Virus record (IMG/VR): IMGVR_UViG_3300024520_000047
Coordinates: 181,875-245,874 of that record
DNA: 64,000 nt
Reading direction: 5' to 3' (one strand)
The notes beneath the pieces are model-generated. The model made no database searches. It was not told where the DNA came from and saw only the letters and a program-made list of their open reading frames with translations. The position numbers and the translations under genes are program-made. Of this stretch, positions 10,118-63,812 are shown piece by piece. Within the stretch, counting starts at the first letter, position 1, and each line of letters starts with the position of its first letter.

Positions 10118-10126
10118 ATAAATAAA

Positions 10127-10906: not shown

Positions 10907-10940
10907 AATCGATGAAGACTATAAAAAAAATATTTTATAA

Positions 10941-11795: not shown

Positions 11796-11798
11796 AAA

Positions 11799-13107: not shown

Positions 13108-13113
13108 GTAATT

Positions 13114-13836: not shown

Positions 13837-13838
13837 AC

Positions 13839-14372: not shown

Positions 14373-14379
14373 TATTAAT

Positions 14380-14931: not shown

Positions 14932-14934
14932 AAT

Positions 14935-17192: not shown

Positions 17193-17195
17193 AAC

Positions 17196-18131: not shown

Positions 18132-18144
18132 TTAAATTAGTTAT

Positions 18145-19009: not shown

Positions 19010-19011
19010 AA

Positions 19012-20103: not shown

Positions 20104-20104
20104 T

Positions 20105-20905: not shown

Positions 20906-20906
20906 T

Positions 20907-32307: not shown

Positions 32308-32354
32308 ATTTTACTTTTAATATAAATAGTAAAATACTAATAAAACTTCTGGGA

Positions 32355-36008: not shown

Positions 36009-37727
36009 TTATTTTAATCCTGTATATAACCATAAATAGTCATTGGGGTCATTTGATTTTGGTGGCAATACATGAGATGTAGCTCTTCCTGGTGTAAAAA
36101 CAGGTTTTCCGTTGTTTTTGGGTAACTTTCTTTCATCCATTGTCCAACTATCAATCATAGCTTTAGCTTGTGCAATATTGTTTTTTAATTGTGTAAAAGA
36201 ATTTTGTGCAACATATAAGGCCATAGACATAGACATAATCAAATCATCATGTTGTCCTCTCATGTGGTCAGGTCTGCCATTAATATATACAAATGTTTTT
36301 AATTCATTAAATAACCTTCTAGAATAAATCTTAAATCCAGTTCTTAATTGTTCCTCTAATGCTTGGACAATTTGAGCTCGTTTACTGTTAAAATTTATGC
36401 CTGGTACTTTGGTATCTGGGTTAAATTTCCACATTTCTGTGGCCTTAATTCCATCGTAATATAAGTCTTTATATCCAAGTTCTATCATTTTACGTGAAGT
36501 GGCTACACCCATTCCTCCAGTAATATCTATCACCACAAAACAACTATATTTGGTGGCCCATTTATGTGCCAAATCAGCGGCAATATCTGGTGGTAATTTT
36601 CCTAAATATTCTACTACTTGTTCTCTCTCATCAAAATCTATTATCTCAAAGCCAGTTGAATCCTCACTATCTCCTCGTGACACATCTATTCCCATTATAT
36701 ACTTATGCCCCACAATGGGTTCTTTCCACACCCACAAACCATTCCCCACCCATTTTTCTATAGGTTCAGTTAATTTTTCTTTTATTTTTTCCGTAGTTTC
36801 TATGGGTATAACGTTATCTCCGGACCCTAAAAACGCACATTCTAATTCCTGTGATATTTTTCTCCTATCAAACTTTAATTTCTTACACATTTCTTCAAAC
36901 CAAAAAGAAAAGGGTTTATATCCGGTTTCTATTAAAGACTCAAAATCCTCTTCTTTTTGATTAGATAATATTTTAATTTCAACATACTCTTCTCTATTTA
37001 AAAGAAAATGAACAATATCTTTAGTTTTTATCCACTGTAAATTTTTACTAAATCTAGGGTCATAATACCAACTCAAAGTACTAATTTGGAAATTATTAAT
37101 TTCTCTAATTGCTTGGTCATACACCTCATAATATATTTGGTCAAATCCGTTTGGTGTAGAGATGACAATAACCTTACCTCCTGTCGCAAGTGAGGCCATA
37201 CAAGCCGCCCATAAATTGGAACCAGCTTCGATATATGCAGCTTCATCAAAAATTAATATGGTTGGTGTATATCCACGTAACGCATCTACCGAGGTGGCAA
37301 CTGCTTTAACCTCTGAACCATTATTTAACTTATAATGTTTTTGTGAATTTTTATCTTTATCAAATCCAGAATTTACCCAATCGGGCCATTGGCGAAGAAA
37401 AGTTTTTATTTTATTTGCCATTTCCGTAGCAGTATCTAATTTATTAGCTAAAATAAGTACTTTTTCTGGACTATCTTCGGATGCAAATTGAAGTTTTTTG
37501 GATATCCAAGCTGAAGTAGCGGTAGAGACACCGGCTTGTCTATATTTGAGAACTATATTATCATCATAATTTTCAAAATCATGAATCATATTTTGTTGTT
37601 CAGGAAATAATTCAAATGGAACGTGTTTATTTTGGGTATTGTCGTATGTTTCTAAATAAGTTTTTAAGGCATAGTAGGTATCCTTATGGCATTTCACATA
37701 TTCTTGTATGAGTTCTTGTCTAGTCAT
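36009..37727 (-). CDS. gp17: Terminase large subunit (T4 gp17-like)
   Basis: LKYRQAGVST (Walker A), LIFDEAA (Walker B), ISTPNG, QELECAF, GIDVSRG, HDDLIMS. Confidence 0.95.
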   Translation of the reverse strand: MTRQELIQEYVKCHKDTYYALKTYLETYDNTQNKHVPFELFPEQQNMIHDFENYDDNIVLKYRQAGVSTATSAWISKKLQFASEDSPEKVLILANKLDTATEMANKIKTFLRQWPDWVNSGFDKDKNSQKHYKLNNGSEVKAVATSVDALRGYTPTILIFDEAAYIEAGSNLWAACMASLATGGKVIVISTPNGFDQIYYEVYDQAIREINNFQISTLSWYYDPRFSKNLQWIKTKDIVHFLLNREEYVEIKILSNQKEEDFESLIETGYKPFSFWFEEMCKKLKFDRRKISQELECAFLGSGDNVIPIETTEKIKEKLTEPIEKWVGNGLWVWKEPIVGHKYIMGIDVSRGDSEDSTGFEIIDFDEREQVVEYLGKLPPDIAADLAHKWATKYSCFVVIDITGGMGVATSRKMIELGYKDLYYDGIKATEMWKFNPDTKVPGINFNSKRAQIVQALEEQLRTGFKIYSRRLFNELKTFVYINGRPDHMRGQHDDLIMSMSMALYVAQNSFTQLKNNIAQAKAMIDSWTMDERKLPKNNGKPVFTPGRATSHVLPPKSNDPNDYLWLYTGLK

Positions 37728-43861: not shown

Positions 43862-45727
43862 TTATTTTACTTCTTCATATTCTACATCTGTAGTTTCAGG
43901 GTCATCTTCAGGTGGTGGTGTTGTGTCACCTTCAGTTTGTTCGTATAACTTACTAGAAATAGTTTGCCATTTGGAATTAAGGTCGTCCATATTAACTTTA
44001 ATTTCATCTAAATCTTCATTTTTGTGAGATTCCCTTAACTTATTAACTGATTCTTGGAGTAACTGTTTATCGTCGTCATTTAATTTTTCATCAAACTCAG
44101 TAATTTGTCTTTCCGTTTGAAAAATCATGGAATCCGCCTCATTTAGTTTATTGATTTTTTCTAACTTTTCTGAATCCTCTTTAGAGTTTTTCTCAGCTTC
44201 CATTTTCATTTTATTAATTTCTTCCTCATTGAGACTATTACCAGATTCGATTCTAATTTTTTGTTCTTTATTAGTTCCTTTATCTTTAGCACTAACACTT
44301 ATAATACCATTTGCGTCAATATCAAAAGTGACCTCAATTTGGGGAATACCTCTTTGTGCAGGTGGAATATCAGTTAATTGAAAATTACCTAATTTTCTAT
44401 TATCCATAGCCATTGGCCTTTCTCCTTGTAGTACATGAATATCTACTGCGGGTTGATTATCTATAGCTGTAGAAAATACTTGGGATTTACTCGTTGGGAT
44501 TGTAGTGTTTGCATCTATAAGTTTAGTCATAACACCCCCCATAGTCTCAATACCTAATGAAAGTGGTGTTACATCTAAAAGTAATACGTCATTAACATCT
44601 CCCGTAAGAACACCCCCTTGTATTGCAGCACCCATAGCTACAACTTCATCTGGATTTACACCTTTAAATGGTTTCTTTTTAAAAAATTTCTCAACAGATT
44701 TTTGTATAGCTGGAATTCTGGTAGACCCACCAACTAAAATAACCTCATCAATGTCTCCAATAGTTAAACCACTATCTTTAAGTGCTTTTTTACATGGGAC
44801 CATTGTTTTCGTCACTAATTTATCAATCATAGATTCGAACTTAGCTGTAGTTAGTTTTTTAACCAAGTGCTGGGGTCCTGTACTATTAGCACTTAAATAT
44901 GGTAAATTGATATCTGTGGAATTTGAAGACGACAATTCTATTTTAGCTTTTTCAGCCGTATCTTTCAATCTTTGTAAAGCGATAGCGTCTTTACTTACAT
45001 CTATTCCAGTATCTGATTTAAATTCATTAATTAACCAATCAATTATAATTTCATCAAAATTATCTCCCCCAAGATGTGTGTCTCCATTAGTAGAGAGTAC
45101 TTCAAATACACCACCACCTATTTCAAGAATAGAAACATCAAATGTTCCACCACCCAAATCGTAAACCACAACTTTTTTGTCTTGATTTTCATCTAAACCA
45201 TAAGCTAATGCCGCTGCGGTAGGTTCGTTTATAATACGTAAAACATTTAACCCAGCAATTTCACCAGCTTCTTTAGTAGCGTTTCTTTGGGAATCATTAA
45301 AATAAGCGGGTACTGTAATAACAGCATCCGTTACCTTAGTTCCTAAATACTCCTCTGCCGTTTTTTTCAAATTTTGTAAAACTATAGCTGAAATTTCTTG
45401 TGGTATATATGACTTTCCATCCACACTAATTTTAATACTATCATTAGTGCTTTTTTCTATTTTATATGGAATTTTACTTATTTCTTTTTTTATTTCACTG
45501 AATTTACTTCCAATGAATCTTTTTACCGAATAAATGGTATTTTCTGGATTAGTTACTGATTGTCTTTTTGCCGAGTCACCAATTACTCGTTCATTGCTTT
45601 TAAAAGCAACAATAGAAGGTGTTGTTCTTTTACCTTCTAAATTTACTATGACTTCAGGTGTACCACCTTCAATTACTGAAACGCATGAATTTGTGGTTCC
45701 TAAGTCAATCCCTATTACTTTTGACAT
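43862..45727 (-). CDS. dnaK: Hsp70 chaperone DnaK
   Basis: [42 protein letters not shown]; C-terminus DVEYEEVK. Confidence 0.98.
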
Positions 45728-45791: not shown

Positions 45792-45814
45792 TAAGTATAC
45801 CGTTTAATTATTTA

Positions 45815-45848
45815 TGACATACTGTCACCATATACTGACATATTGTCA
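45815..45848. promoter_or_regulatory. Tandem palindromic operator-like sites between divergent dnaK and clpC
   Basis: TGACA-TAC-TGTCA (45815-45827) and TGACA-TAT-TGTCA (45836-45848), 21 bp apart. Confidence 0.65.
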
Positions 45849-45897
45849 CTACTTGATTTTAAAAGGTATTAATGTATTATTTATAATAAAAAATGTT

Positions 45898-47949
45898 ATG
45901 ATAGAACCGACAGGAAGTTTTGCAGAATTTGAAAAGGGTAAACCCCAAAATTTACCTAAAAAAGAATCACTTTCATCGAAAAGTGGAACACCAGTACTAG
46001 ATAATTTTTCAAGAGATTTGATAAAATATGCGGAAGAAGGAAAATTAGACCCCGTGGTTGGGAGAGAAAAAGAAATTAATAGAATAGCCCAAATTTTATC
46101 ACGAAGAAAAAAAAATAATCCAGTATTAATAGGTGAACCAGGGTGTGGAAAAACCGCACTAGTAGAAGGGTTGGCTATGAAAATAAATGAAGGTAAATGT
46201 CCTCGTAATTTATTAGATAAAAGAATTGTGGGATTAGACCTAACATCCATCGTAGCTGGTACCAAATATAGGGGTCAGTTTGAAGAAAGAATGAAAGCTA
46301 TAATTGATGAATTAGTAGAACATGAAGAAATTATAATTTTTATTGATGAGATTCATACCGTCGTTGGAACCGGAAATGCTTCTGGTTCATTGGACGCCGC
46401 CAACATATTTAAACCCGCATTAGCACGGGGGGAGGTACAATGTATTGGAGCAACCACCATAAATGAATATAGAGAAAATATTGAAAAGGATGGTGCTCTA
46501 GAAAGAAGGTTTCAAAAAATAATAGTCGAACCCACAACTGTAGAAGAAACATTACAAATACTTAAAAATTTAAAAGAACGTTATGAAGAACACCATAAAG
46601 TTAATTATAGTGATGAGTCTTTAGAAGCTTGTGTGTTATTATCTGAAAGATATTTGACTCACAGAGAATTTCCAGATAAAGCTATAGATATTATGGATGA
46701 AGTGGGAGCTAAAGTACAAGTAGAATTAGAATACCCTAAAGAAATTGAGGATTTAAGACGAATACTTAGTGATTTAAAAGAAGAAAAGGTAGAGGTGGTA
46801 AAATCACAAAAATATGAAAAAGCCGCGGAATTAAGAGATAAGGAACGCACAGTTTTAGGTACTCTTGAAGAAAAAAAATTGGCGTGGGAAATGGAATTAG
46901 AAGATAGTCGTAAACCAGTAACGGAAGATGATATATATGATGTAGTTTCCCAAATAACAAAGATACCCATATCTAGATTAGACACTAATGAAACAAAAAC
47001 ATTACTGAGTTTAGAGAGCTCTCTTCAAAAAATTGTAATAGGTCAAAATGAAGCTGTCAAGAAAGTTGCAAGAGCCATCAGGCGTAATAGGGTTGGGATT
47101 AGAGATAATAAAAAACCAATTGGTTCTTTCATGTTTTTAGGTTCCACGGGTGTTGGTAAAACTCACTTAGCTAAAGCGATTGCACGTGAGGTGTTCGGTA
47201 ATGAAGATTCTTTAATACGGTTAGATATGTCAGAATATAAAGAAAAATTCAATTCAACAAGATTGATTGGTTCACCACCTGGATATGTTGGTTATAATGA
47301 AGGGGGTCAACTAACTGAAGCTGTTCGCAAAAAACCCTATTCGGTAATATTGTTAGATGAAATAGAAAAAGCTCATTCCGATATTTATGACCTATTATTA
47401 CAAATATTTGATGAAGGGCATATAACTGATAGTTTAGGGAGAGTCATTAATTTTAAAAATACCCTTATCATTATGACCTCTAATGTGGGAGCTAAACAAA
47501 TGGGTGAATTTTCAAACCCTTTAGGGTTCACAACGAAAGATTCTGAATCAAGAACAGAGGAAGCGGTATCACAAATATTGAAAAAAGCACTAAAAAATAC
47601 CTTTAAGCCAGAATTTCTAAATAGGGTAGAACATAATATAATATTTAAAAGTTTAGAAAAAAAATCTATTAGTAAAATAGTAAGGTTGGAACTGAATCAC
47701 TTACAAGAAAGATTAAAAGAAAAAAAATACCACATGACTTTTGATAAAAAGGTAACTGATTTTATTGTAAAAGAAGGGTATGACGATAAATTCGGTGCAA
47801 GACCAATAAAAAGAGCAATTCAAAATAAGTTAGAAGATTTTATTTCTGAAGAAATATTAAAAGGAAATGTCGTGGAACACAATACCTACACTATGAGAAT
47901 TAATAAAGATAATGAAATTACTATAAACGAAGAAAGTGATAATGAGTAG
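45898..47949 (+). CDS. clpC: ClpC-type AAA+ unfoldase lacking the N-terminal Clp_N domain
   Basis: Two Walker A motifs ([16 protein letters not shown]), UVR coiled coil ([10 protein letters not shown]), ClpP-binding LGF loop; start moved from 45814 to 45898 as the extra 28 codons cover the operator. Confidence 0.88.
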
Positions 47950-47953
47950 TTTA

Positions 47954-50341
47954 TTAGGCAATAACTGCTCCATATGAACCAGTAACTATCCAACCAGCAT
48001 CTGCATCCCAAAGTAAATCAATCGAATCTCCCGCATCTGTTAGTGTAAAACTACTATATGGGCTAGTCCACGTATTAATGGTCATGGAACCAGTAAGTGA
48101 ATCGTCATACACATAAATAGTCAATCTTTGTCCCTGACTACCATTAGGTAAAGACCCCGGAGCCGGGGACGAACCTATTTGTGCTATTCTCCAAATAGAT
48201 TTTTTACTTATAGAGGGTGAAACATCGGCATCTGTAGTTACTATCCCTGTTTTATGTATTTGAGCTTCTGCGATTAAAGTATCACCTATGTAAGTAGTAC
48301 TTAATGTAGTTACCCCTGTGCCCGTTAAATCACCATCAACAACAGCTTCAGGGCCTATTGTAACGGGTGAACAACCAGTTATGGTAGACACGTATAATGT
48401 TCCACCAAACTCACATAAATCTACATTGGGCATATAAACTGTATCGTCGGCATTTCCTGTAATGCCAAACCCACCAAGTACTGCACTTCTATCTCCATTG
48501 ACTATGGAGTTAAAAGAATGTGCAAATGAAGTTAAACCTGAAGCTGTGGAACCACTACCCCCCGCGTGGGAACCTGAACCAGCCGCTACAGTTTTAATAT
48601 TTTGAGCATGAGACGCGTCTCCTGACGCTATGGGCCCAATATCGGTTGGTCCTGGGATGCCTATCTCAATATTTGGTCCTCCTTCTGCATGTGCCCACTT
48701 ACCACTAGCAATTGTATTATGTCCTTGAGCGTGAGAACCATAATTACCACTTGCAATCGTATAACCACCTTCAGCGTGAGAACCTGTACCTGAGGCTAGA
48801 GTATTATATCCTTCAGCGTGACCTACTGCCTCTGTTGTTGCAGAGGTTTGGTATCCCTCAACGTGTGAATAATCAGCGTCTGCTGTAATAATTGTCTGAT
48901 ATCCTTCACCATGTGAATAATTACCTATAACTGTAGTGTAAAATCCTTCCGCGTGAGAATAATCACCATGAGCTTTTGTTCCTCTTCCTTCCGAGTGTGC
49001 TGTAACTCCAGTTGCTTCTGTTTGGAATCCTTGAGCGTGACAATAATATTTTGCTCCACTGCCCGCTAATGTCCCATATCCTTCTGCGTGAGACATATGA
49101 GTCATAGCAGATGTTTGGGCCCCTTCAGCGTGAGACCCAATACCTAAAGCATACCCACCAATATAGAGACTAGCCCCAGGAAGTATATAACCACCTTCAG
49201 CGTGAGAACAAGCTCCTATAGCTAGTGACCCATATCCTTCTGCGTGAGAAACTTGTCCACTAGCTAAGGTAAAACCACCTTCTGCGTGAGCACCCATTGT
49301 AGTTGCTGAAGTAGGTGCTATTGTAGGTAAGTCTCCAGTTTTTATTGAGCCACCTTCAGCGTGTGAAGCAGTACCACTTGCGAGATTCCCCCACCCTTCA
49401 GCGTGAGAATAGTTTTCTATTGCTCTTGTATAAGACCCTTCAGCATGGGACGACAGTCCACTAGAAATTGTAGTGTGTCCTTCAGCGTGTGAAGCTATAC
49501 CATACGCTTTAGTATCTATGCCTTCAGCGTGTGAACCATAACCTATCGCTGTCGTATCTTTACCTTCAGCGTGAGATGTGTCTCCAGTTGCCCACGAACT
49601 GTCTCCCTCCGCATGAGAATAGTTCCCTTCAGCTTGTGTACTTATACCTTCCGCATGTGAACTATTACCATATGCTTGAGTGTCTGTACCTTCAGCGTGT
49701 GAACCCTGTCCTGTTGCTATAACACCAGTTTTCCACCCATAACCTTCCGCGTGAGCACCTCTACCGATAGCTATATTAGTCGCCAACCCACCATCACTGT
49801 ACCCCTCAACGTGTGAACCATAACCTATCGCTGTCGTATCTTTACCTTCAGCATGAGATGAAGTTCCCGTCGCCCAAGTGTTTTCGCCTTTAGCGTGAGA
49901 ATAGTTCCCTTCAGCTAATGTGGTACTTCCCCACGCTATAGAATTAATGCCTGTTGCGGATGAAGTAATATGTTGGATAGGACTATGTTCTGTAACAGCA
50001 TCTAAACACGCGTATCTATTATTTATATATAAATTAGTTATACAACTACCACTTCCACCACTAAATACAGTATCTGCGGGGTCTAATAGACCAAACATTA
50101 TCGTATCTCCCGAAATAAAGGTTGTAATTCCGCTGGTTCCTTGAAGTCGTCTAAAATTTAATGCCCCATCATTAGGGTTAGCTGTCTTACTCACATAGAG
50201 ACCTATACCACCAGAACCTAGATTATTTCCAATGGTATTATCTATTTTTTGACTTAAAATACTAAGATTACCATCTAACTCACCATGAGTTAATGCGTTA
50301 CTTTGGCTTAATCTTAAATAAAATGGAATTGGTAATGGCAT
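47954..50341 (-). CDS. Tail fibre/adhesin with ~30 SHAEG beta-roll repeats
   Basis: 14-aa xxTxAxGxxSHAEG repeats (YadA-head-like); N-terminal LTHGELDGN; TATTTAT at 50359-50365. Confidence 0.75.
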   Translation of the reverse strand: MPLPIPFYLRLSQSNALTHGELDGNLSILSQKIDNTIGNNLGSGGIGLYVSKTANPNDGALNFRRLQGTSGITTFISGDTIMFGLLDPADTVFSGGSGSCITNLYINNRYACLDAVTEHSPIQHITSSATGINSIAWGSTTLAEGNYSHAKGENTWATGTSSHAEGKDTTAIGYGSHVEGYSDGGLATNIAIGRGAHAEGYGWKTGVIATGQGSHAEGTDTQAYGNSSHAEGISTQAEGNYSHAEGDSSWATGDTSHAEGKDTTAIGYGSHAEGIDTKAYGIASHAEGHTTISSGLSSHAEGSYTRAIENYSHAEGWGNLASGTASHAEGGSIKTGDLPTIAPTSATTMGAHAEGGFTLASGQVSHAEGYGSLAIGACSHAEGGYILPGASLYIGGYALGIGSHAEGAQTSAMTHMSHAEGYGTLAGSGAKYYCHAQGFQTEATGVTAHSEGRGTKAHGDYSHAEGFYTTVIGNYSHGEGYQTIITADADYSHVEGYQTSATTEAVGHAEGYNTLASGTGSHAEGGYTIASGNYGSHAQGHNTIASGKWAHAEGGPNIEIGIPGPTDIGPIASGDASHAQNIKTVAAGSGSHAGGSGSTASGLTSFAHSFNSIVNGDRSAVLGGFGITGNADDTVYMPNVDLCEFGGTLYVSTITGCSPVTIGPEAVVDGDLTGTGVTTLSTTYIGDTLIAEAQIHKTGIVTTDADVSPSISKKSIWRIAQIGSSPAPGSLPNGSQGQRLTIYVYDDSLTGSMTINTWTSPYSSFTLTDAGDSIDLLWDADAGWIVTGSYGAVIA

Positions 50342-50388
50342 ATCTACTTATTTACTATATAAATATCGCCAGTATAAAAAAGAGAAGT

Positions 50389-51442: not shown

Positions 51443-51516
51443 GCTCCCGTAGCTCAACTGGATAGAGCAACAGCCTTCTAAGCTGTAGGTTATAGGTTCG
51501 AGTCCTATTGGGAGTA
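51443..51516 (+). tRNA. trnR: tRNA-Arg (UCU)
   Basis: Full cloverleaf: GCTCCCG/TGGGAGT acceptor, ACAGC-CTTCTAA-GCTGT anticodon arm, ATAGG-TTCGAGT-CCTAT T arm; CCA not encoded. Confidence 0.95.
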
Positions 51517-51599
51517 CGTAAAAAATTTTGTAATATTCTTTGTATTGTCAAGTATTTATATTACATTTATAATTAGTTCTTTGAAAATATTTAAAATAT

Positions 51600-52013
51600 G
51601 GGGGTGACTGGAATTGATTGGCATACACCGATAAAAGTCAGCACGTCGAGGCTAAACTAACCTTGGAAAACTGGTTTAACTTTCTAAAACGGCAACGTAT
51701 TAGATACCATGACAACTCTTGGACTTATCCATGACGAGTCAACTGTGACTGTAGCGTAACTAGGTTACGACTATTTTTAGTCCCGTTCTTACTATAGAAT
51801 TTAAGATTTGTTTCTTTAGTTTGTAGAACGTCATAAGACAAATCGAACTCACCGTAGTCATTTAGGTGATTAAAATATTAAATGACTGGGACTCTGGATG
51901 GTTGTTTATTCTATGAAAGATTAGTCCGAGGATAAAAGAATAAACTAAACGTGTAGGATAGATTTCTATAGTTGATGAGCAAGACGCGGGTTCGAATCCC
52001 GCCACCTCCACCA
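51600..52013 (+). ncRNA. ssrA: tmRNA
   Basis: 5' GGGGGTGACTGGAATTGA; 3' GCGGGTTCGAATCCCGCCACCTCCACCA; G3-U Ala identity pair; internal tag ORF 51691-51759. Confidence 0.93.
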
Positions 52014-52026
52014 TATTAAATTAATT

Positions 52027-52137
52027 AAGTGGGTACCTGAGACGGACGCTTCGTAGCCTGTAATGGATAGAATGGGTAAGACCATTTAGGGTATTAATCT
52101 CCATTGAGACCCGCGTTCTTGGAGAACCCACTTTTTT
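52027..52137 (+). ncRNA. Putative structured RNA downstream of tmRNA
   Basis: Closing helix AAGTGGGT/ACCCACTT plus nested helices AATGGA/TCCATT, AATGG/CCATT, ACGG/CTGT, then T-run. Confidence 0.4.
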
Positions 52138-52981
52138 ATTTTCCTAAATTTTGGGTGAATTTACCCATATATTTTTGTAGTAAGTCACTCATGATGCCTC
52201 CACCATCTGACTTACTCTGTTGGTATGAAGCCGCGGTATCTGTTGGTGGTTCCTCAACCTTTTCACCGTACTTCACTTTTTCTTTTCCCTCTTTTTCTTT
52301 ATCATCAAGTACGCCCTGTACCTCATCTTTCTTTTGTTTTAATTTACCACATAAAACCTCTTTTACTTTTCCTTCTATTTCTTGATATATAGCACTATTG
52401 TCCCCTATATCAGTTAAACTATTACGTAATACCTGTTCAAAAGTACCGTCAAGCCCTATAGTAGATTCACCTAATTTAAAAGCTCCATATTCTATAATTC
52501 CTTTTGTTAGAAATGGTGCTAAAAAGTTACAATCAAGTAATTTGGGGATGTCCCATATTGGTACGTTTCCTAATGCAATCCCTACAAATTTTCCTAACTC
52601 TCCTGTTATTCCAAAAGTCCCTAATAACCACCTCCATAACTTTTCTCTTACGGTACCCCATAAAGAACCCAAAATACCTTGATTCTGGGACATCGTGAAC
52701 TCCTGTTCTGACAAATATTTTTTATTATGTTTTAAAGAATAAGAAATTTCATCTAATGTAAATCCCCTACTTGTAAGACGATGCATATCTCTAACAAAAT
52801 TTTCACATATAACATCAGGTGATTTCCCAATATTTTTACGTTCAAATCGGTCTGCCCAATTAATTAATCTTATGTTTTTGGATTCAGATAACACTGGTTG
52901 TTTGGGTATCGACATTTCAGATTGTGCTACACTCTCAATAAATTCAACTAATTCTGACTCTGTAAATTTAATTTTTGACAT
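52136..52981 (-). CDS. Putative internal head protein with amphipathic/hydrophobic helices
   Basis: N-terminal KIKFTESELVEFI leader, LSE sites, Gly/Trp-rich hydrophobic middle. Confidence 0.65.
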   Translation of the reverse strand: MSKIKFTESELVEFIESVAQSEMSIPKQPVLSESKNIRLINWADRFERKNIGKSPDVICENFVRDMHRLTSRGFTLDEISYSLKHNKKYLSEQEFTMSQNQGILGSLWGTVREKLWRWLLGTFGITGELGKFVGIALGNVPIWDIPKLLDCNFLAPFLTKGIIEYGAFKLGESTIGLDGTFEQVLRNSLTDIGDNSAIYQEIEGKVKEVLCGKLKQKKDEVQGVLDDKEKEGKEKVKYGEKVEEPPTDTAASYQQSKSDGGGIMSDLLQKYMGKFTQNLGK

Positions 52982-52988
52982 TTCTTAA

Positions 52989-55271
52989 TTATTTTTTTCT
53001 ATTTCTTCGTTTATTTTGACGTGCTCTACGTTTTTCTTTTTTGGTTGGTTTTGGGTCTCCTTTTCCCGTCAATCCATATTCAGATTTAACTTTAGAACTT
53101 CCACCCCCAATAAAATTAAAGTCATCATAACAGTGAGATAAGGCTTGATATACATTTTTACCACCTTTTTTAGGTAATAATTCAGCACTATAACTAATTA
53201 AATCCTTACACCCTTCTTTTGTTGGTGCTAATTTAACCTCATCTTCTAATGTCTTCGTAATGTTTTTCATATCTTCTTGGGTCCCTTTAAATTCGGGTAC
53301 TTTAACTTCTTGATTGGAGGAAGCTACGTCCTCTTTAGGTGTGGACATTGCTTTTAACATAAAAGAAGCGGTTTCTGGGCCAATAACTCCGTCAACCTTT
53401 AATCCGTTAGTCGATTGATAATTTTTAACAGCAGTGTGGGTTGAATCATCAAATACGCCGCTTTCATTCATTCTTAAAAATTTCTGTATTCTATTGATTG
53501 ATGTCCCTTTTTGTCCTTTTTTAATTAATCCGTTTCCCGCTGCGGCATCTTCTAATGATGGAGCAGTGGTTGCACTTGGTGTAGATTTTTCTTTCTTTTC
53601 TTTACTACTACTATTGTCATCCCCACTTCTTCTTCTGCTAATTTTATGTCTGTCATCATCAGAGTCATATTTTACAGTATACTTACCTTCACTAACTAAT
53701 TGACTTTCATTTAAAACTTTTCTTAAATCATGAATAGACTCTTCTAATACCTCAAAATCATTAACCCCCATTGCCATAGATATCGCGGCACCTTGTATAA
53801 CACTTGGTTTTCTTTTTGCTGTATTTGGGTTATCCTCCACTAAATCATCTATATATTCATCAGCTGTTCCTTCAGGTCCTTCTATCATATCTAAGGTTTC
53901 ACCTTTTTCATAAACCACACCATTAACCTCTATATCATCACTTAAAGTCATTAAATCACTACCTTCGTCAGCCTTATTAAATATTTTCATTACTTTAGCT
54001 TTATCTTCATCATCTTCTATAACAAATGTTTCACCATCTAAAGTCCTAAAGTATACTTTATCTTCAGAATTTTCAATATATTCAAACATTCCCATATAAT
54101 CTTTACTACCAGCACCAAAAACTATTGCAGTATTAGACGCCCCTGCTGTGTCTACAAAGACATCCACAGTCTGACCACCAAAAAGAGTTTTAAATGTTAT
54201 TCGATAGGCTGGTAATCCTTCTGGTCTTTCAAATAAATCCTTAGACAGGTCTTCCATCTCTTTTTCTAAATCTTCTATAGTATAAATTCTTTTTCCGTTA
54301 ATTATACATAAAGGTTTATCTTGTAATATAGTTAAAATGGGTTGGAAATCTGATTCATTTAATTCGTCACCCAATTCTTCTATTAAAGAACCATATTTTA
54401 AATCATAGATTCCTGTTAAGTGAGAACAATCATATAATGTAGCTACATTTCTAAAGGCATTGTATATACTTTCTTCATCTGTACCCGCACCTTCAGTAGC
54501 ACCAAACGAAATAAAATCCACTAATCCTTTACCGAAATATTTTTCACCACCTTCTGTAGCGTCTTGAATCATGTCAGCTAACCCCGCTAATTGTGCTTCG
54601 CTTTGAAAGGTAAATGGGATTTCTTCAGTTAATCCCTGCTTTTCAGCTTCGTCATATACCGCAGGATTAAAAGCAATTGCTAATATGTCTTCTTGACTTA
54701 GTGTACCACCATTTGCCCATTGTTCCATGGATGCTGCCGCGTCTCCCGGTCCCTTTCCAGACATATTACTAGCTGCCAGATATCCTCCGCCCCCCAATAC
54801 GGTTAAAGCTTTTAACCCTCCTAAAACACGTGCATTTAAAATAGATTTACTTTGGGCGGCAGTTAATGTTTTTGCTCCACCGGGTAATTTTCCTAAACTT
54901 AATCCACCAGAAGCTATTTTACCAACATTCTTGGTCCCTAAACCAGCTTTAGCTAACCCACCTGTTGGTACTTTGGTAATCCCCCGCATAAATTTAGGTA
55001 AAACACGTGCTCCACCTCGTGCAATCCATGGTCCTAATCTTGCTAATCCACCTACAATAGCCCCCCAAAACTCTAGTTGTAATTCCCCATCAATTGGTGG
55101 TGTATCGGTGATAATTTCTTTGTTTTCTTTTATAACTTTAGGTTTTATTCTACTGTCATTGGTATTTCCCAACAATACCTTTTTAGTTTTTGATGGAAAA
55201 TCCTTACTGTAACTCTCCAAATAGACCATTTTTTTTAATTCTTCCTCAAGTGTTTTTTTTGGTTTTTTCAT
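52989..55271 (-). CDS. Multidomain virion protein: Gly-rich membrane helices, annexin repeat, peptidoglycan-binding domain
   Basis: GAGTDEESI...LGDEL annexin repeat; LIKKGQKG...VKNYQSTNGLKVDGVIGPET PG_binding_1 motif. Confidence 0.75.
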   Translation of the reverse strand: MKKPKKTLEEELKKMVYLESYSKDFPSKTKKVLLGNTNDSRIKPKVIKENKEIITDTPPIDGELQLEFWGAIVGGLARLGPWIARGGARVLPKFMRGITKVPTGGLAKAGLGTKNVGKIASGGLSLGKLPGGAKTLTAAQSKSILNARVLGGLKALTVLGGGGYLAASNMSGKGPGDAAASMEQWANGGTLSQEDILAIAFNPAVYDEAEKQGLTEEIPFTFQSEAQLAGLADMIQDATEGGEKYFGKGLVDFISFGATEGAGTDEESIYNAFRNVATLYDCSHLTGIYDLKYGSLIEELGDELNESDFQPILTILQDKPLCIINGKRIYTIEDLEKEMEDLSKDLFERPEGLPAYRITFKTLFGGQTVDVFVDTAGASNTAIVFGAGSKDYMGMFEYIENSEDKVYFRTLDGETFVIEDDEDKAKVMKIFNKADEGSDLMTLSDDIEVNGVVYEKGETLDMIEGPEGTADEYIDDLVEDNPNTAKRKPSVIQGAAISMAMGVNDFEVLEESIHDLRKVLNESQLVSEGKYTVKYDSDDDRHKISRRRSGDDNSSSKEKKEKSTPSATTAPSLEDAAAGNGLIKKGQKGTSINRIQKFLRMNESGVFDDSTHTAVKNYQSTNGLKVDGVIGPETASFMLKAMSTPKEDVASSNQEVKVPEFKGTQEDMKNITKTLEDEVKLAPTKEGCKDLISYSAELLPKKGGKNVYQALSHCYDDFNFIGGGSSKVKSEYGLTGKGDPKPTKKEKRRARQNKRRNRKK

Positions 55272-55314
55272 TATTATTCTTTTTTTTATAAATATATTAT
55301 TTTTTCTTTAAAGT

Positions 55315-56259
55315 TTATTGTCCTTGCATGGCACCAACCATTTCTTCTTGGTCTTTAATATTTAACGAATCAAAAGCTTCCTCACCTTCTTTTGAACCTA
55401 AAAATTCTTTAAATTTACTATTCACATCTCCCTCTGACATGGTGTCTATTGCGGCACTTCCACCCGCAATACCTGTTAACCACCCAATAAATTTAACCCA
55501 TAGTTTAGTTCTATTCAATAATCCCTTACGTTGCATTCTCGTTAAAATACCCCCACTTCTAAATATTCTTATATTTTTTACCCCTTTAGCTGATAATTCC
55601 GCAGCTTCTCTAAAAACTCTACTATACGTTTTTACATCTTTGGAAAATGTCTTTAAAAATGGTACTTTACCTAATTTTGCTGCGGTTTTTGCTAAAAATC
55701 CAGTAACTTTAGAATCTCCCATTGCTCCCAAGACAGCTTTTCCTTCTTTAGTTTTTCCCATATTTTTTGCCACCTTAAGTGCATCACCAGTTTTTAATCC
55801 AGCATTAATTGCTGTTTTATTAACCTTCCCCAATTTCATAATACCAATAAATGGTTTGGCTATTAAATCTCCAACGTAAGGCACAACAGAAATTAAACTT
55901 AACATACCATATAACATATCACCCTGTCTAAAATAAGATACAGCATTAACTGTATCCGCTATTCCGGTTGGGTCTACAATACCAACCACATCTAACATTG
56001 TATTATACCACCTACTTTCTTGTAGTGGGTTTGCCTTTCCTCTACTAATAGAATATGTGTCAGCCCAGTGAGTTACCCCACCAGCGGGATTTGCCGGTCC
56101 TCTTGTTAACCCAGACTCCCATTGTTTAGCTCCTGTTCCACCAGCATCTGAAACACCAGTTTCTACACCAGCACCTTCAGTGCCACCTTCAAGTTCTTGT
56201 TCTTCAAGTGAGGTTCGTATAATAGATATTAGTTCTGTTTCACTGAGAAATACCTTCAT
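55315..56259 (-). CDS. Putative internal head protein with pre-toxin TG-like domain
   Basis: LDVVGIVDPTGIADTVNAVSY...GDMLYGMLSLISVVPYVG; N-terminal KVFLSETELISII leader. Confidence 0.6.
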   Translation of the reverse strand: MKVFLSETELISIIRTSLEEQELEGGTEGAGVETGVSDAGGTGAKQWESGLTRGPANPAGGVTHWADTYSISRGKANPLQESRWYNTMLDVVGIVDPTGIADTVNAVSYFRQGDMLYGMLSLISVVPYVGDLIAKPFIGIMKLGKVNKTAINAGLKTGDALKVAKNMGKTKEGKAVLGAMGDSKVTGFLAKTAAKLGKVPFLKTFSKDVKTYSRVFREAAELSAKGVKNIRIFRSGGILTRMQRKGLLNRTKLWVKFIGWLTGIAGGSAAIDTMSEGDVNSKFKEFLGSKEGEEAFDSLNIKDQEEMVGAMQGQ

Positions 56260-56261
56260 TA

Positions 56262-56561
56262 TTAACCATTCATTTTAACATCAACAGTGACTGTTACACC
56301 GACTTTACCATCATTTGTCTTCCACTTCCATGTTTTCTTTAGCTTATCGTCTTCTAAGGTTTCAGTCATACTTTTATTACGAAGACTAAAAGCTCCTTTA
56401 GTTGCTTCCAAATGACCAACAACATCCTTAAAAGTTTTTTCTGCTGATGGATGTGATTTTGTTGGTGTTGGTTCGTCTTGTTTTTCTTCTTGTTCCTTTA
56501 AAGTCGTTTCTATTACTTTAATTAATTCACTTTCAGTAAGTCTAATTGTTTTATTTTTCAT
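56262..56561 (-). CDS. Small protein with RLTESELIKVI leader
   Basis: 99-aa ORF in operon. Confidence 0.65.
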   Translation of the reverse strand: MKNKTIRLTESELIKVIETTLKEQEEKQDEPTPTKSHPSAEKTFKDVVGHLEATKGAFSLRNKSMTETLEDDKLKKTWKWKTNDGKVGVTVTVDVKMNG

Positions 56562-58112: not shown

Positions 58113-59126
58113 ATGAAAAAGAAGGAATTAAAAGCTAACCACCCCGAGTTGGACATACATTTAGTTGACGTACTTAATCTTTTAGACCCATCTCAAACTA
58201 ACAAATACACCCAATTTTTAATTAAAGAATTTAAAAAAATTTATTCTAATTTCGAAAAATCAGAAAGGATACATCCAACCCTACACACCCCAACCATAGG
58301 TAAACTTTTTAAAAGTGGTTCAGTTTTAGAACACCACATTCTAGATTTTATTATTGAAATTTTAGGTAAAGAAAATATACACGCTTTAATAGATTTTAAT
58401 ACACATTTAGAAAATAAAAGAACTCAAATTACCGATATATCTAAACTGGAATCTTTTGGTGATGTACATGAACAACTTGTACTAGCAGAATTAAAATATA
58501 GTAATAATAAAATTAAAAAAGAAGTTAGTACGTTATACGACGATGGTGTGTGGTTAATAATAAAACCATTAACTTATGAATCCTCTAAAGTTTATGGTGC
58601 TTCTACCAAATGGTGTACGTCACAACGAGATAACCCACGACCATTTTATGAATACTCTAAAGAAGGCATATTTTTATATATTATTAATAGAGTAACAAAT
58701 AAAAAAATTGCAGTTAACTGGACTATTGATGGTTCACATATAGAGTTATCGTGGTGGGATGAGGTAGATAATCGGTTAGATTCAATGCAAACTCAACTAC
58801 CAAAACACATACTAGAAAAAATAAAAGAATTACTAAAAAGTGAAAACTTACCTAACCATAATTTTTTTAATAAAAAAGAAAAAAATAAATGTGAAGATGT
58901 TTTAAATAAATATAGTTCTGTAATACCGTCACCAGACGCGTGGGCTGTGTATAATCGTAATACTGAAACAAATGACTGGTATTCTATGAGTGATGGTAAT
59001 AATTGGACTATTAGTGATGAATCAGATGTACACTCTATGGGTGTAGATGAAGTTATTAATAAAACTTTAGAATATAATTACACCTATAAATCACTTAAAA
59101 AGTCATTAGAGGATTTAAACGATTAA
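58113..59126 (+). CDS. Hypothetical protein with YGxxTKWC motif (PcfJ-like fold possible)
   Basis: IKPLTYESSKVYGASTKWCTS...FYEY...LYII, a motif frequent in large-phage proteins. Confidence 0.5.
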   Translation: MKKKELKANHPELDIHLVDVLNLLDPSQTNKYTQFLIKEFKKIYSNFEKSERIHPTLHTPTIGKLFKSGSVLEHHILDFIIEILGKENIHALIDFNTHLENKRTQITDISKLESFGDVHEQLVLAELKYSNNKIKKEVSTLYDDGVWLIIKPLTYESSKVYGASTKWCTSQRDNPRPFYEYSKEGIFLYIINRVTNKKIAVNWTIDGSHIELSWWDEVDNRLDSMQTQLPKHILEKIKELLKSENLPNHNFFNKKEKNKCEDVLNKYSSVIPSPDAWAVYNRNTETNDWYSMSDGNNWTISDESDVHSMGVDEVINKTLEYNYTYKSLKKSLEDLND

Positions 59127-61624
59127 CCCCAATAATGTTTATATGTATTCTCGTTTAAGGGTTCTGGGGTATCTATAGGGTTACTTTCAAACCCCACTTC
59201 TTTAGTAGAAAAAGGACTTTGTCCTTCATTTTTAAAAATTAATACCTCACCTTTATTACTAGGCCCAAACACAAAATAATCTACATTAGATGGATTATAA
59301 TACTTTAACCCGGTAGACTTAACAACGTGTTGATTTTTTCTTTTATAAAAACCATATAGGGGTTTGGCTTGGTACGTATGCATCTTACCACTCTCTTTAT
59401 TTTTAACCTCAATATCAACCCCGCTCACCGCATCTCGTCTTAAACCAGGATTTGCCTTCCAAATAACTTCATACCCATCTCCGTACCAGTCTTTTAAATA
59501 GTTCGACGCTCCAGTTTCATTTTTAATTCCGTACCCCCACGTACTATGATTTGCAGCTGTTAATTTTTTAAGAGTATCACTATTAGGGTGAAATAAATCC
59601 TTTTTATTGTAATATATAAAATCCACAAATTCATCTATATTAAAATTAAGGGGTAAATTATTCTGAGTTAAATACGATTCATAACTCTCAAGTAATATAT
59701 TTCTAACTACTGGATTAGTGTTAAAAAAATTCAGTATAGACCACCCATAATCACTTCCTTTGGCTACTTCAAAATTTAGAATTCCTTCCATGTGCTCATC
59801 GGTTGGCTTACCCCAACTATGATTAATATTTAGGTCCTTATCCTTGTATATTTCTTTTAAAGAATTATCAATAACTTCTTTAACTTTCCCCATCCAAGTT
59901 TTAGGTCCTCTATGTTTCCATTGGTAGTCACTTTTTATGGTATCTAATTTAAAATTATCTGGAATAAGGTGTTGGAGTGTTGGTCTTGTTTCTTTATTTA
60001 ATACAACATATAACCCCCCTCTTTTAGAGGTTCTAAAATTTCCTGCTTGTACTTCAGCCCATTTATTTGGGTCATCTTCATTTCTTAATGTAATGAATTG
60101 TGTGTCTGGGTCAGGTAGACCGGAAGTACCATTAAAAAATAAAATATGGTTAAATTTTCCACTCCCTAAAGCAGCCTTTTTGTACGTAATTTCTTTATAT
60201 TCTTCTTCTTTCAATATATTTTCTTTTGTTTCTGTAGGTGGTCCTAGTTTACGGTAAACATCCACATCTGGTAATAAGGGCATATTTTTAAATTGTTCGT
60301 TTTCTGGGTCGATAATCCACCTTACAAGGATTTTTTCACCCAATGCAGGCATACTCTCAAAACCCATAACAACACCCTTAGTTGCAACGGGAATGGGGTT
60401 CCATGGGTCTTCCATGTGAAGTAATTGAATGACATCTCCTATCTCTACTGGGGGGTTAGTACCCTTACTTTCATTAAGTCTTCTACGCTCTTGGGCATCT
60501 TCTAAAAACTTTCCACTTAAAATAAATGTATATAAACGACGAGCAATAGATTTAAAAACAGCATTAACATTTTCCATTGACATGTCACCATCTGAATTTT
60601 CTATTGTACTTAATGCACTCCGTGTCAATGCGTCTCTCACACTTTGGGCATTTTCCCATAAATAAAGTAAATCTTCATTTCCATATTCATGAAAAAATTT
60701 ATCGTAATCTGGGGGAAAGGCATTATTTTCTTCGGCCCATCTTAATATTTCCCCCGCGTATTCTCCCTTTAAATTAGATTCAGCGTCAGTTAAAAATGGA
60801 GATAAATCAGTCATGATTGGATTATAACGGCCCCAACTTCTAAGTCTCTCTACAAAATCGGCCACCAATATTCGGTCATTTCCTCTAAGGGCTTTTAATA
60901 AATCCACATTACCTAATAATCTTTCCATATCATCAGCCATTGCTTCTTTTAATATTCTACTTTCGTCTACTTCCCCTCGTCCCGATGATTTTAAATTATA
61001 CCCATCATCTGGATTATCAGTTAAATTAATTTTTTCTAAATGCCTTGGAGTTAATAATTCTTCTACCGGTATACCTGCACTTTTTAACTCCATCATAAAA
61101 TTATATAATGTGTTATAATCTTTTTTAAGATTTTCGTCGAGACATTTACCCACACAATCTGGGTCTATACCGTAGTCACCACAATAACATCGGAATTCCA
61201 TTACAATATCATAAAAAACGTCGAATAATAAAATTGCAAATACCCAGTCTAGGTGAACACCCTTTAATATTTGTAATTTATTATCTAATGTTGGGTAAAA
61301 TTCGAAAAACTTAGAACTACGTTGGTGGAATCCTTGTGCCTCCCTTGAAGTGGCAGGTGGGATATCACCTAATATTTCTGAAAAGTCAGGAGTTTCAAAA
61401 TCGGGATTAAGTAGCCCTAGCTTGGTCCCTTCTTTTACCGCGTCATCTAGAATGTATAGGGCATCATCAAAATTTGCTGAGGGGTCAGTAAAACTTTCCG
61501 CGTAAGTACTGGGGTGGTAAGTTTTATATAATTGTCTATATAAATTACCCTTATGTGGTTTCCAAAATTTCTTTAAAAAATATTTGAAGGGTTCTATGGG
61601 TGGTAGTGTCTCGTATTCTTCCAT
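59123..61624 (-). CDS. Multidomain protein with DUF4314-like and C-terminal PD-(D/E)XK nuclease-like domains
   Basis: GDVIQLLHMEDPWNPIPVATKGVV (DUF4314-like); E...D...GVD...TYQAK nuclease-like motif; domains separated by ILKE/LNE. Confidence 0.6.
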   Translation of the reverse strand: MEEYETLPPIEPFKYFLKKFWKPHKGNLYRQLYKTYHPSTYAESFTDPSANFDDALYILDDAVKEGTKLGLLNPDFETPDFSEILGDIPPATSREAQGFHQRSSKFFEFYPTLDNKLQILKGVHLDWVFAILLFDVFYDIVMEFRCYCGDYGIDPDCVGKCLDENLKKDYNTLYNFMMELKSAGIPVEELLTPRHLEKINLTDNPDDGYNLKSSGRGEVDESRILKEAMADDMERLLGNVDLLKALRGNDRILVADFVERLRSWGRYNPIMTDLSPFLTDAESNLKGEYAGEILRWAEENNAFPPDYDKFFHEYGNEDLLYLWENAQSVRDALTRSALSTIENSDGDMSMENVNAVFKSIARRLYTFILSGKFLEDAQERRRLNESKGTNPPVEIGDVIQLLHMEDPWNPIPVATKGVVMGFESMPALGEKILVRWIIDPENEQFKNMPLLPDVDVYRKLGPPTETKENILKEEEYKEITYKKAALGSGKFNHILFFNGTSGLPDPDTQFITLRNEDDPNKWAEVQAGNFRTSKRGGLYVVLNKETRPTLQHLIPDNFKLDTIKSDYQWKHRGPKTWMGKVKEVIDNSLKEIYKDKDLNINHSWGKPTDEHMEGILNFEVAKGSDYGWSILNFFNTNPVVRNILLESYESYLTQNNLPLNFNIDEFVDFIYYNKKDLFHPNSDTLKKLTAANHSTWGYGIKNETGASNYLKDWYGDGYEVIWKANPGLRRDAVSGVDIEVKNKESGKMHTYQAKPLYGFYKRKNQHVVKSTGLKYYNPSNVDYFVFGPSNKGEVLIFKNEGQSPFSTKEVGFESNPIDTPEPLNENTYKHYWG

Positions 61625-61675
61625 CTTCTATAAATAGTTATAGACTTATTTAAAAAAATATAGTATCTTATTCAT

Positions 61676-62216: not shown

Positions 62217-62534
62217 CTATTTTTTTTCCTTTTTAAGTAGTTCTACCCACTTTTCTGAAACTATTTTATAATAAAATTTGTCATTTGCAAAATATAAGGA
62301 TTCACCAAACCCTTTATTAATTAATTGTCCTATTAGTGGAGCTTTGTCGTCACCCCACCCAATACTGATGGTGGTGTACTTATTAGTTTTTTTATTTGGT
62401 AGGTCCGATTTAATAGGGTTCATTAAGCGATTAATTAGTTGTGGCTTAGTACCAGATACTTTTAATCCTTTTTCTTTACAAAGGGATTTTAATCCTTTTA
62501 CTGTCATTTTTCTATATTTTTTCTCTGTATTCAT
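62217..62534 (-). CDS. SAP-domain DNA-binding protein
   Basis: MTVKGLKSLCKEKGLKVSGTKPQLINRL is a canonical SAP motif. Confidence 0.8.
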   Translation of the reverse strand: MNTEKKYRKMTVKGLKSLCKEKGLKVSGTKPQLINRLMNPIKSDLPNKKTNKYTTISIGWGDDKAPLIGQLINKGFGESLYFANDKFYYKIVSEKWVELLKKEKK

Positions 62535-62587: not shown

Positions 62588-62893
62588 TTAAAAATCGTCT
62601 TCGTTAAATGGGTTCATTTGACTTTTAAGTTGGACCATTATCTTAGAATAGTCATTCATGGGACCCACGAAATCATTTCTTACCTTACCTAATTCGTGTT
62701 TCAACCTATCTTGTACCAGTATTCCCTCAACTAATGAAGAAAACACATCCATCGAATCTCTAAATTTCATATAATTTTCGAATAGGGTCTTCATCATGGC
62801 TTCCTCATCCTGTGCTCCTATATTTGGGTCGTCATACCCACCCACCTCATTAAGTAGTTTTTGATATTGTGAATTATTTAATTTAACTTTCAT
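62588..62893 (-). CDS. Hypothetical late protein with KVKLNNSQYQKLLNE leader
   Basis: 101 aa; TATTTAT at 62898-62904. Confidence 0.65.
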   Translation of the reverse strand: MKVKLNNSQYQKLLNEVGGYDDPNIGAQDEEAMMKTLFENYMKFRDSMDVFSSLVEGILVQDRLKHELGKVRNDFVGPMNDYSKIMVQLKSQMNPFNEDDF

Positions 62894-63759: not shown

Positions 63760-63812
63760 AGTTTTTATATATAAATAGTGACAAAACCGTTAAAATTGTT
63801 TACATTTATTAA

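Follow-up and report, generated by a model that had tools for sequence, protein, structure and literature searches.

The stretch of DNA analysed here (the window) covers the final 64 kb of the 245,874-base IMG/VR record IMGVR_UViG_3300024520_000047, a viral record estimated to be 77% complete. The stretch is present in seawater metagenomes of several studies, and the source phage is an uncultured marine T4-like jumbo phage. Its open reading frames (ORFs), translated with genetic code table 11, include a minus-strand ORF of 833 amino acids (aa), P0001, and an identical protein is also encoded on a 293 kb contig. An initial annotation had described P0001 as a late, polyprotein-like gene of four modules that are segmented by L-x-E sites and end in a nuclease-like domain, and had proposed that the prohead protease cuts it inside the head into separate effectors. 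In T4, [L/I]-x-E marks the sites at which the prohead protease, gp21, cuts. In the best reading of the sequences, P0001 appears to be a fusion of gene-sized modules that are found separate or recombined within a marine clade of T4-like jumbo phages. On this reading, sister phages have the units as separate, leader-bearing proteins, and the linkers of P0001 would be retained leaders bearing the prohead-protease motif. The features of the locus are as follows.

59123..61624, minus strand: whole ORF P0001, 833 aa, ATG start, stop included; full-length homologs are 37-86% identical
60944..61624, minus strand: module 1, aa 1-227, ending at L225-K-E227; common to P0012-16
60470..60943, minus strand: module 2, aa 228-385, ending at L383-N-E385; model confidence 70-89
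60206..60469, minus strand: module 3, aa 386-473, a DUF4314-like barrel ending at L471-K-E473, which is kept in every homolog
59150..60205, minus strand: module 4, aa 474-825, ending at L823-N-E825; mean model confidence 79.5; standalone homologs P0031-33
59150..59551, minus strand: predicted PD-(D/E)XK nuclease-fold sub-domain, aa ~692-825 (Foldseek, VIA, Atlas, BFVD)
59126..59149, minus strand: C-terminal octapeptide NTYKHYWG after the fourth motif; model confidence below 50
61629..61636, minus strand: TATTTATA motif, a candidate promoter element common to head genes, ending 4 nucleotides (nt) before the ATG

The minus-strand ORF at 59123..61624 is real, and the junction strings on which the initial annotation was built are all present: RILKE-AM (L225-K-E227), RRLNE-SK (L383-N-E385), NILKE-EE (L471-K-E473) and PLNE-NT (L823-N-E825). 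The string DAVSGVDIEV...HTYQAKP is also present and holds D731, D737, Q752 and K754. The conservation of the ten [LI]xE motifs of P0001 has been scored as [LIVM]xE in the ungapped sequences of an alignment of 14 homologs (A1). The four junctions chosen in the initial annotation (P1 residues E227, E385, E473, and E825) are the best conserved of the ten. Junctions 1 (E227) and 4 (E825) are each kept in 9 of 10 homologs. Junction 2 (E385) is kept in 10 of 13, with the remaining three shifted by one column, and junction 3 (E473) in 11 of 11, with an adjacent Q-[LI]-D-E in the three gapped homologs. Five of the other six motifs are kept in just 4-9 of 10-14 homologs. The exception, I663-D-E, has a retention (12 of 14) comparable to that of the junctions, but lies within a helix.

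The placement of the junctions follows the same pattern. In AlphaFold models of aa 1-472 and aa 473-833, all four junctions are located in stretches with a predicted local distance difference test score (pLDDT) below 50. The first model has a mean pLDDT of 65, with folded parts at 70-89 and values below 50 at aa 203-245, 385-387, and 463-472. The second has a mean pLDDT of 79.5, and its confidence falls over the last ~10 residues. The non-conserved [LI]xE motifs are located in helices or hairpins, and the junction motifs are the only conserved elements of otherwise variable, disordered linkers. The [LI]xE motifs of P0001 are thus beyond chance in placement and conservation, not in number. Behind the fourth motif, the octapeptide follows a tail pattern, xxYxx[YF]W, that is kept in full-length homologs and absent from shorter ones; one could speculate that it is a regulatory tail.

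The presence, absence and shuffling of parts among homologs confirm that the four modules are separable. Module 1 is helical and carries a conserved EFRCYCGxxGIDPxCxGKC cysteine motif, whose invariant residues come from a further alignment (A6); its aa 75-123 are a variable insert of low model confidence. A search of five related contigs, which had no positive control, did not find module 1. Module 2 is all-helical and the most conserved module. It is missing from the orthologs P0012-16, which share module 1, and it occurs at 55-64% identity in an otherwise unrelated metagenomic family of ~585 aa (P0017-29) that has no Pfam match. In this family, I-R-E|S stands directly before module 2, a conserved L-x-E comes ~25 residues after it, and the proteins start with a 10-residue leader, MK(R/K)xI(K/R)NI(K/Q)E. 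Neither module 1 nor module 2 has a credible fold match (best Foldseek E value 0.13; template-modelling score below 0.4 in the ESM Atlas), and the wide VIA rows for the aa 1-472 model cover module 3 only. Since modules 1 and 2 have been folded only as parts of a 472-residue model, a novel fold is not claimed for them.

The resemblance of module 3 to DUF4314 (PF14192), suggested in the initial annotation, is supported by a weak Pfam match at aa 396-426 (E value 0.0084, 16.5 bits, below the cut-off of 27). With 27.3 bits at the corresponding position, the ortholog P0015 passes the cut-off, and P0009, P0012, and P0014 score 16-19 bits. The predicted fold is an SH3/Tudor/KOW-type beta-barrel, with Foldseek matches to PetP and the UHRF1 Tudor domain (probability 0.98-1.0) and VIA Z scores of 6-7.5 over aa 388-465. 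A literature search returned no paper mentioning DUF4314. In more distant phages of the clade, module 3 forms the N-terminus of ~200-aa proteins. In three of four of them, [LI]xE and then a helical domain come after it, the latter being related to the C-terminal half of module 2. In one contig (L031, G003:C1), a 541-aa ORF at ~132816-134423 carries an insert between a DUF4314-like module and a module-2-like helical domain. The insert contains the motifs GKGSTI... and FDRSWYNR, looks polyphosphate kinase 2-like by eye, and is flanked by I-N-E|S before and V-N-E|N after.

Module 4 occurs on its own as the 378-379-aa proteins P0031-33. The 10-11-aa leader of these proteins, MNIIKKIIKE|E, aligns column for column with the ...ENILKE|E of junction 3 (alignment A9). 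As a result, an N-terminal leader in one phage corresponds to an internal linker in another. The genome from which the window comes contains no paralog of module 2 or of the module-4 core in the recovered 77%. A profile of the core (aa ~546-820) matches 424 cluster representatives at E values of 1e-3 or below, and 269 at 1e-10 or below, among 1.84 billion proteins. By sequence, at least 424 clusters make up the large and uncharacterised viral family that this core defines. The family is present in all five related contigs searched, with one or two genes each. Most members are 240-400 aa long, and the core starts 15-30 residues from the N-terminus, behind leaders of 10-17 aa ending in [LI]xE; typical examples are MKIVITESQYKLLSE, MKYFLSEKQLKVIEE, MNIILNEQQYISLLE, MKNLIKMIIKE, MKSLIRNILRE, and MKTLIKKILVE. 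An [LI]xE ending within aa 5-22 is found in 68% of the members that start with Met, compared with 43% of 367 neighbouring ORFs (p 1.5e-7). The same leader is carried by 33 of these 367 ORFs of the related contigs, so the background is itself leader-rich. No relevant paper was found in the literature with leader strings such as LTESEL or ITESQY.

The leader of those 33 ORFs, which is of the type MK..(h)(T/S)E(S/T)EL(I/V)..I...LxE, is also present in the window. Four adjacent minus-strand genes (52136-52981, 52989-55271, 55315-56259, and 56262-56561) and a further one at 62588-62893 (minus strand) carry it. One leader-bearing protein, of 760 aa, has a PG_binding_1 peptidoglycan-binding domain and endolysin-like matches. 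Lysin-type enzymes are usually carried in virions. On the basis of their leaders, these genes may encode a set of capsid-targeted proteins.

Eight of the longer family members are fusions to an Fe/Mn superoxide dismutase (P0057, P0103, P0125, P0148, P0151, P0162, P0163, and P0166), and one more is fused to pentapeptide repeats. In seven of the eight, a leader that contains two or three [LI]xE motifs and ends ...[LI]-x-E|MKKIGIE(K/R)LPY stands before the dismutase; P0103, the eighth, has its leader motifs ~10 residues further upstream. Behind the dismutase, each of the eight has an [LI]xE with Ser or Ala as the next residue (mostly K-L-T-E|S), and in seven a second [LI]xE is located ~10 residues beyond. 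P0057 appears to hold two copies of the core, and P0103 and P0125 have an extra N-terminal region with an HExxH-like string, HEWVHxHQ. In 50,697 cultured-phage records, the fusion P0148 finds matches through its dismutase part only. Each of the related near-complete genomes has a standalone family gene and a second one of ~520 aa. Judged by length only, the ~520-aa genes at G002:C1:54099-54800, G004:C1:12725-13516, and G005:C1:168605-169312 are probably dismutase fusions.

The modules evolve at different rates. Distant homologs are 52-62% identical to P0001 in module 2, 49-83% in module 3, and 34-38% in module 4. By this comparison, modules 2 and 3 are the slowest-evolving parts of the protein, which makes them better candidates for head assembly or targeting than for effectors. 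They may therefore be assembly or targeting domains rather than the host-directed effectors of the initial annotation. Some genomes have major capsid proteins (MCPs) that are 73-75% identical to that of this phage, and in them the family member nearest to module 4 reaches only 27-38% identity. Fast divergence has been described for the T4 internal proteins (PMC3012670), and the divergence of module 4 beside a conserved MCP parallels it.

The initial annotation treated module 4 as a single unit ending in a nuclease-like domain. The predicted fold at its end stood, while the single unit did not: module 4 comprises three sub-domains, a beta domain (aa ~474-542), a helical 'GWSILNFFNTNP' domain (~547-714), and an alpha/beta nuclease-fold domain (~692-827 by structural alignment). 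Two independent structure searches and an invariant E...D...QxK support the prediction of the fold. In the PDB, the best Foldseek match is I-Ssp6803I (2ost; E value 2.8e-4, probability 1.0); SPARDA nuclease subunits and Hjc resolvases come next. A VIA-align search of 48,161 chains gives the same best match, with a Z score of 8.8 that is barely above the level the tool calls common (root-mean-square deviation 3.5 Å, 117 residues aligned), then Hjc (Z 7.9, 7.6, and 7.3) and HhaI (Z 7.3). The PD-(D/E)XK superfamily supplies almost every one of the top 35 VIA rows. The ESM Atlas and BFVD return PDDEXK_5-type clusters and a dismutase fusion (A0A6J5L953, E value 1.8e-12). The assignment of the fold therefore rests on the agreement of methods, the uniform family of hits and the conserved residues, and not on the Z score of 8.8 alone.

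In an alignment of 24 sequences down to 23% identity (A5), E703, D731, D737, Q752, and K754, encoded at about 59363-59518, are invariant and E800 is near-invariant. E703 is located on the long helix before the sheet, D737 at a strand start, and Q752-x-K754 on the next strand. The spacing of 34 residues from E to D and 15 from D to Q is close to that of Hjc. W628, S629, I630, N632, and F634 of the preceding helical domain are also invariant in the 24 sequences. This WSILNFF domain (~150 aa, N-terminal to the fold) always accompanies the nuclease-fold domain. No Pfam nuclease family, including PDDEXK_5 (PF11645), is matched: an hmmscan of P0001 at E values up to 1 gives DUF4314 only, and ten homologs give none. 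In the best reading of the sequences, the module-4 fragment would most likely be a metal-dependent phosphodiesterase acting on nucleic acid.

A TATTTAT motif was noted 5 nt upstream of P0001 in the initial annotation, and it is located there: TATTTAT at 61630-61636 on the minus strand is followed by AGAAG and then the ATG. On the coding strand, the motif is found 11-27 nt upstream (motif start to ATG) of 15 of the 70 ORFs in the window, and the opposite orientation is rare. The genes that it precedes include those of the prohead protease, a 243-aa core-like protein, the terminase, a YadA-like fibre, the 760-aa lysin-domain protein, and P0001. The wider form is [A/C]TATTTAT[A/T], with examples at 32321-32328, 50358-50365, 55287-55294, 61629-61636, and 63770-63777. 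In upstream regions compared from other contigs (L002-L025), TATTTAT is present 13 nt upstream in all five P0001 orthologs examined and 11-35 nt upstream in seven of nine distant standalone family members. The sharing of the motif with head genes and its retention at orthologs support co-regulation of P0001 with the head genes, and the P0001 gene is presumably late. From its sequence context, TATTTAT is a candidate promoter element of this phage clade, and its closeness to the start codon would make the mRNA leaders very short or absent. The T4 late promoter TATAAATA is not enriched in the window (23 occurrences compared with 18 +/- 4.5).

A Pfam and PHROGs scan of the window identifies T4-type head genes in T4 gene order on the minus strand, with small core-like proteins also in the cluster, listed between the portal and the protease.

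36009-37727, minus strand: large terminase (TerL), head cluster
33875-35683, minus strand: gp20-like portal (PF07230)
31597-32307, minus strand: gp21-like prohead protease, Peptidase_S77 (PF03420, 82.6 bits; phrog_207)
29811-31493, minus strand: acidic scaffold-like protein, 560 aa, head cluster
27974-29770, minus strand: gp23-like MCP (PF07068)

The nearest cultured capsid proteins, from Flavobacterium phage immuto and Microcystis phage Mel-JY01, are ~41% identical. The S77 protease at 31597-32307 is presumably the enzyme that would process P0001, whose gene is 27 kb away. Peptidase_S77 is encoded on four of the five related contigs; the fifth is 56% complete. The S77-family proteases that have been studied all cut after Glu in an x-X-E motif (PMC5694885, PMC3012670, PMC10052503). 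In this phage, [LI]xE occurs about twice as often as expected in the scaffold-like protein (18 compared with 8.7) and in the 243-aa core-like protein (10 compared with 3.9). Of all 20 residues, L (z 4.4) and I (z 2.2) are the sole ones enriched at P3 before x-Glu in these two proteins, and the preference for A/S/G of the phiKZ-like protease type is not seen in them. The MCP has HLINE|A at aa 57-60, a site kept in five phages, and the variable stretch behind it leads into a conserved core. We take this site to be the equivalent of the T4 gp23 LTE|A maturation site.

Based on these observations, a chain of four steps can be proposed. The P0001 gene would be expressed alongside the head genes, its product would be taken into the prohead core, and the S77 protease would cut it after E227, E385, E473, and E825. 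The aa 474-825 fragment (~41 kDa) would then remain with the packaged DNA and enter the host at infection. Cleavage, packaging and nuclease activity of P0001 are what we infer from the sequences, and the whole case rests on comparative and structural prediction. The full chain, from packing through cutting at four sites to the delivery of a nuclease-fold protein, seems to us somewhat likelier to be right than wrong.

Several observations weigh against this chain. The number of [LI]xE motifs in P0001 is at chance (10 observed compared with 10.0 +/- 2.9 in shuffles), and the motif is common, as the 43% of neighbouring ORFs with one near the N-terminus show. The density of [LI]xE upstream of the core in the family has only a ~2-fold peak (-20..-11), with similar peaks inside the domain. 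The enrichment of L-x-E in the helical scaffold-like proteins could partly be explained by amphipathic helix periodicity. P0001 itself begins with MEEYETLPPIEPF... and has no short leader of 10-20 aa ending in [LI]xE; its first [LI]xE is at aa 162. Entry into the prohead would have to take another route; by analogy with the long propeptides of giant phages (PMC10052503), module 1 or 2 may mediate it.

Homologs of P0001 have been found in metagenomes only, and neither P0001 nor the family member P0060 has a tblastn match among the 50,697 cultured-phage records. This absence of cultured family members at tblastn sensitivity also counts against the proposal. P0001 matches two PHROGs families of unknown function at E values of about 0.05 and nothing named, sequence searches of the PDB with the protein and a profile give nothing or spurious matches, and no RNA run contains the stretch.

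The nuclease end of the argument has its own difficulties. Besides the modest Z score, a Gln (Q752) occupies the position of the second acid in the classical (D/E)xK, so activity is not assured. D731 or E800 could substitute for the missing acid. Members of the superfamily with catalytic residues relocated within the fold have been described (PMC3384342), which makes nuclease activity of P0001 plausible from its sequence. A nuclease packed beside the phage's own DNA would also need restraint.

Three other explanations have been considered. In the first, modules 1-3 (473 aa) are a long propeptide for assembly or targeting that is cut up and expelled or degraded, as happens in SPN3US, phiKZ and other giant phages, and only module 4 stays as a functional ejection protein, so that P0001 would not be a series of effectors. 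We consider this unlikely. Giant-phage propeptides are 111-254 aa long with several cuts (PMC10052503, PMC5694885), those of the SPN3US ejection proteins being cut internally at several sites (PMC10052503). The strong conservation of modules 2 and 3 is expected of domains that contact a conserved head such as this one, and Foldseek, Atlas, and VIA find no enzyme fold in modules 1 and 2. On the other hand, modules 1-3 are folded and conserved, with pLDDT values of 70-89, and exist as independent proteins elsewhere. The known propeptides are also shorter and have many internal sites, whereas these modules have no conserved internal sites.

In the second, which we consider a little less probable still, P0001 is an uncut multidomain cytoplasmic nuclease for host DNA breakdown, recombination or repair, and the L-x-E motifs are ordinary features of linkers and domain ends. 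The chance-level number of [LI]xE, the missing N-terminal leader, and the location of the gene, in a neighbourhood of functionally unassigned genes 27 kb away from the head module, all agree with this. In addition, SH3/Tudor-like domains are common beside nucleic-acid enzymes (RecD2, Pif1, UvrD, Hpy99I). What an uncut enzyme leaves unexplained are the 10-17-aa leaders of the standalone proteins, which end in [LI]xE and align on the internal junction, the presence of an unrelated cargo, superoxide dismutase, on the same K-L-T-E|S linker, and the motifs as sole conserved elements of variable disordered linkers.

The third, a selfish homing endonuclease whose mobile PD-(D/E)XK domain inserted in frame into various phage genes, is very improbable: free-standing homing endonucleases are numerous in T4-like phages, the intron-encoded I-Ssp6803I gives the best structural match, and the domain occurs in varied architectures, but the family is conserved rather than sporadic in the five related contigs, the domain always comes with its helical partner, the fusion is in frame with conserved linkers and leaders, and no intron or intein context is seen.

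The packaged and trans-cut polyprotein can be extended to a more general and more tentative proposal, which we regard as possible and somewhat less probable than not. The capsids of this clade of marine jumbo phages may carry 'cargo trains', in which unrelated enzymes are strung together or carried singly. Under this proposal, the units would include the PD-(D/E)XK-fold protein, the Fe/Mn superoxide dismutase, a polyphosphate-kinase-2-like enzyme, and pentapeptide-repeat proteins. The leader of the K-[LI]-T-E-S type before each unit would be both a capsid-targeting signal and a prohead-protease site. Gene fusion and fission could then freely re-sort the injected, host-bound proteins. If the main reading of P0001 is right, the idea of T4 internal proteins widens from single small proteins to multi-module polyproteins cut in trans. 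The [L/I]-x-E leader or linker would then be a sequence rule that predicts packed and injected proteins in uncultured marine jumbo phages. It would give a first role to at least 424 protein clusters that are now unannotated, and unexpected cargo such as superoxide dismutase would be injected. The leader would also be potentially useful for loading foreign proteins into these capsids, as the T4 leader already is.

Other genes of the window have also been identified. A full-length tmRNA is located at 51600-52013 on the plus strand (Rfam RF00023, 103 bits, gathering score 47); it was missed by ARAGORN, which found the adjoining tRNA-Arg(TCT) at 51443-51517 (plus strand). A called ORF at 51862-52014 on the minus strand is probably only the antisense of the tmRNA 3' end. 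A full-length Hsp70/DnaK (855 bits; 43862-45727, minus strand), a Clp-like ATPase with two AAA+ domains (phrog_4871; 45814-47949, plus strand), and a small SAP-domain protein (62217-62534, minus strand) are also encoded. The 795-aa protein at 47954-50341 (minus strand) has YadA-head repeats and TATTTAT upstream, and is probably a fibre or adhesin. In a run of plus-strand genes at ~6859-21605, the N-termini resemble, by appearance, those of sugar-nucleotide enzymes and glycosyltransferases, with GxxGxxG Rossmann starts at 6859 and 16164. These genes could be relevant to surface sugars or to DNA modification, and hence to the protection of the phage's own DNA from a packaged nuclease.

Among known systems, the T4 internal proteins IPI, IPII, IPIII, and Alt are the first comparison. 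This phage has homologs of gp20, gp21, and gp23, and the standalone relatives of P0001 have short N-terminal leaders ending in hydrophobic-x-Glu. As in T4, the family diverges fast beside a conserved capsid, and delivery with the DNA is presumed. T4 targeting leaders are 10-20 aa long (PMC5694885, PMC3012670), and with the T4 leader even a foreign nuclease has been loaded into heads (PMC3012670). A T4 internal protein is a single unit that is cut once, at the N-terminal end. For P0001, four cuts would be required, of which three would separate folded modules and one would fall close to the C-terminus, and P0001 itself lacks a short leader. P0001 has no sequence similarity to any T4 internal protein.

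The ejection proteins of the giant phages phiKZ, 201phi2-1, and SPN3US also belong to jumbo phages with an S77 protease that cuts after Glu, and they share long N-terminal regions removed by several cuts and paralogous families of head proteins. The giant-phage proteases prefer A/S/G at P3, whereas only L and I are enriched here, as in T4. No homology to these ejection proteins was found in PHROGs or by tblastn of the 50,697 phage records. Polyvalent proteins (Iyer et al. 2017, PMC5512222) likewise combine several unrelated domains in one polypeptide, and nuclease domains are common among them. They are predicted to travel with the DNA and have been proposed to be cut into working units (PMC5512222). 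The processing of polyvalent proteins is attributed to a zincin-like peptidase domain that they carry themselves, and they are organised around hubs such as MuF (PMC5512222), whereas P0001 would be cut in trans by the head protease; a Pfam scan of P0001 and its homologs contains no MuF or zincin-like MPTase domain.

The nuclease-fold domain shares with PD-(D/E)XK nucleases of the I-Ssp6803I/Hjc type the predicted core fold, the acid of helix 1 (E703), the Asp of the second strand (D737), and the x-K of the third (K754). It differs from them in its QxK, the extra invariant D731, the preceding helical domain of ~150 aa, and the lack of a Pfam nuclease match. Taken together, what sets P0001 apart is, relative to the polyvalent proteins, the lack of a peptidase and hubs of its own; relative to the giant-phage proteins, the specificity and the lack of homology; and, relative to the T4 internal proteins, its multi-module character.

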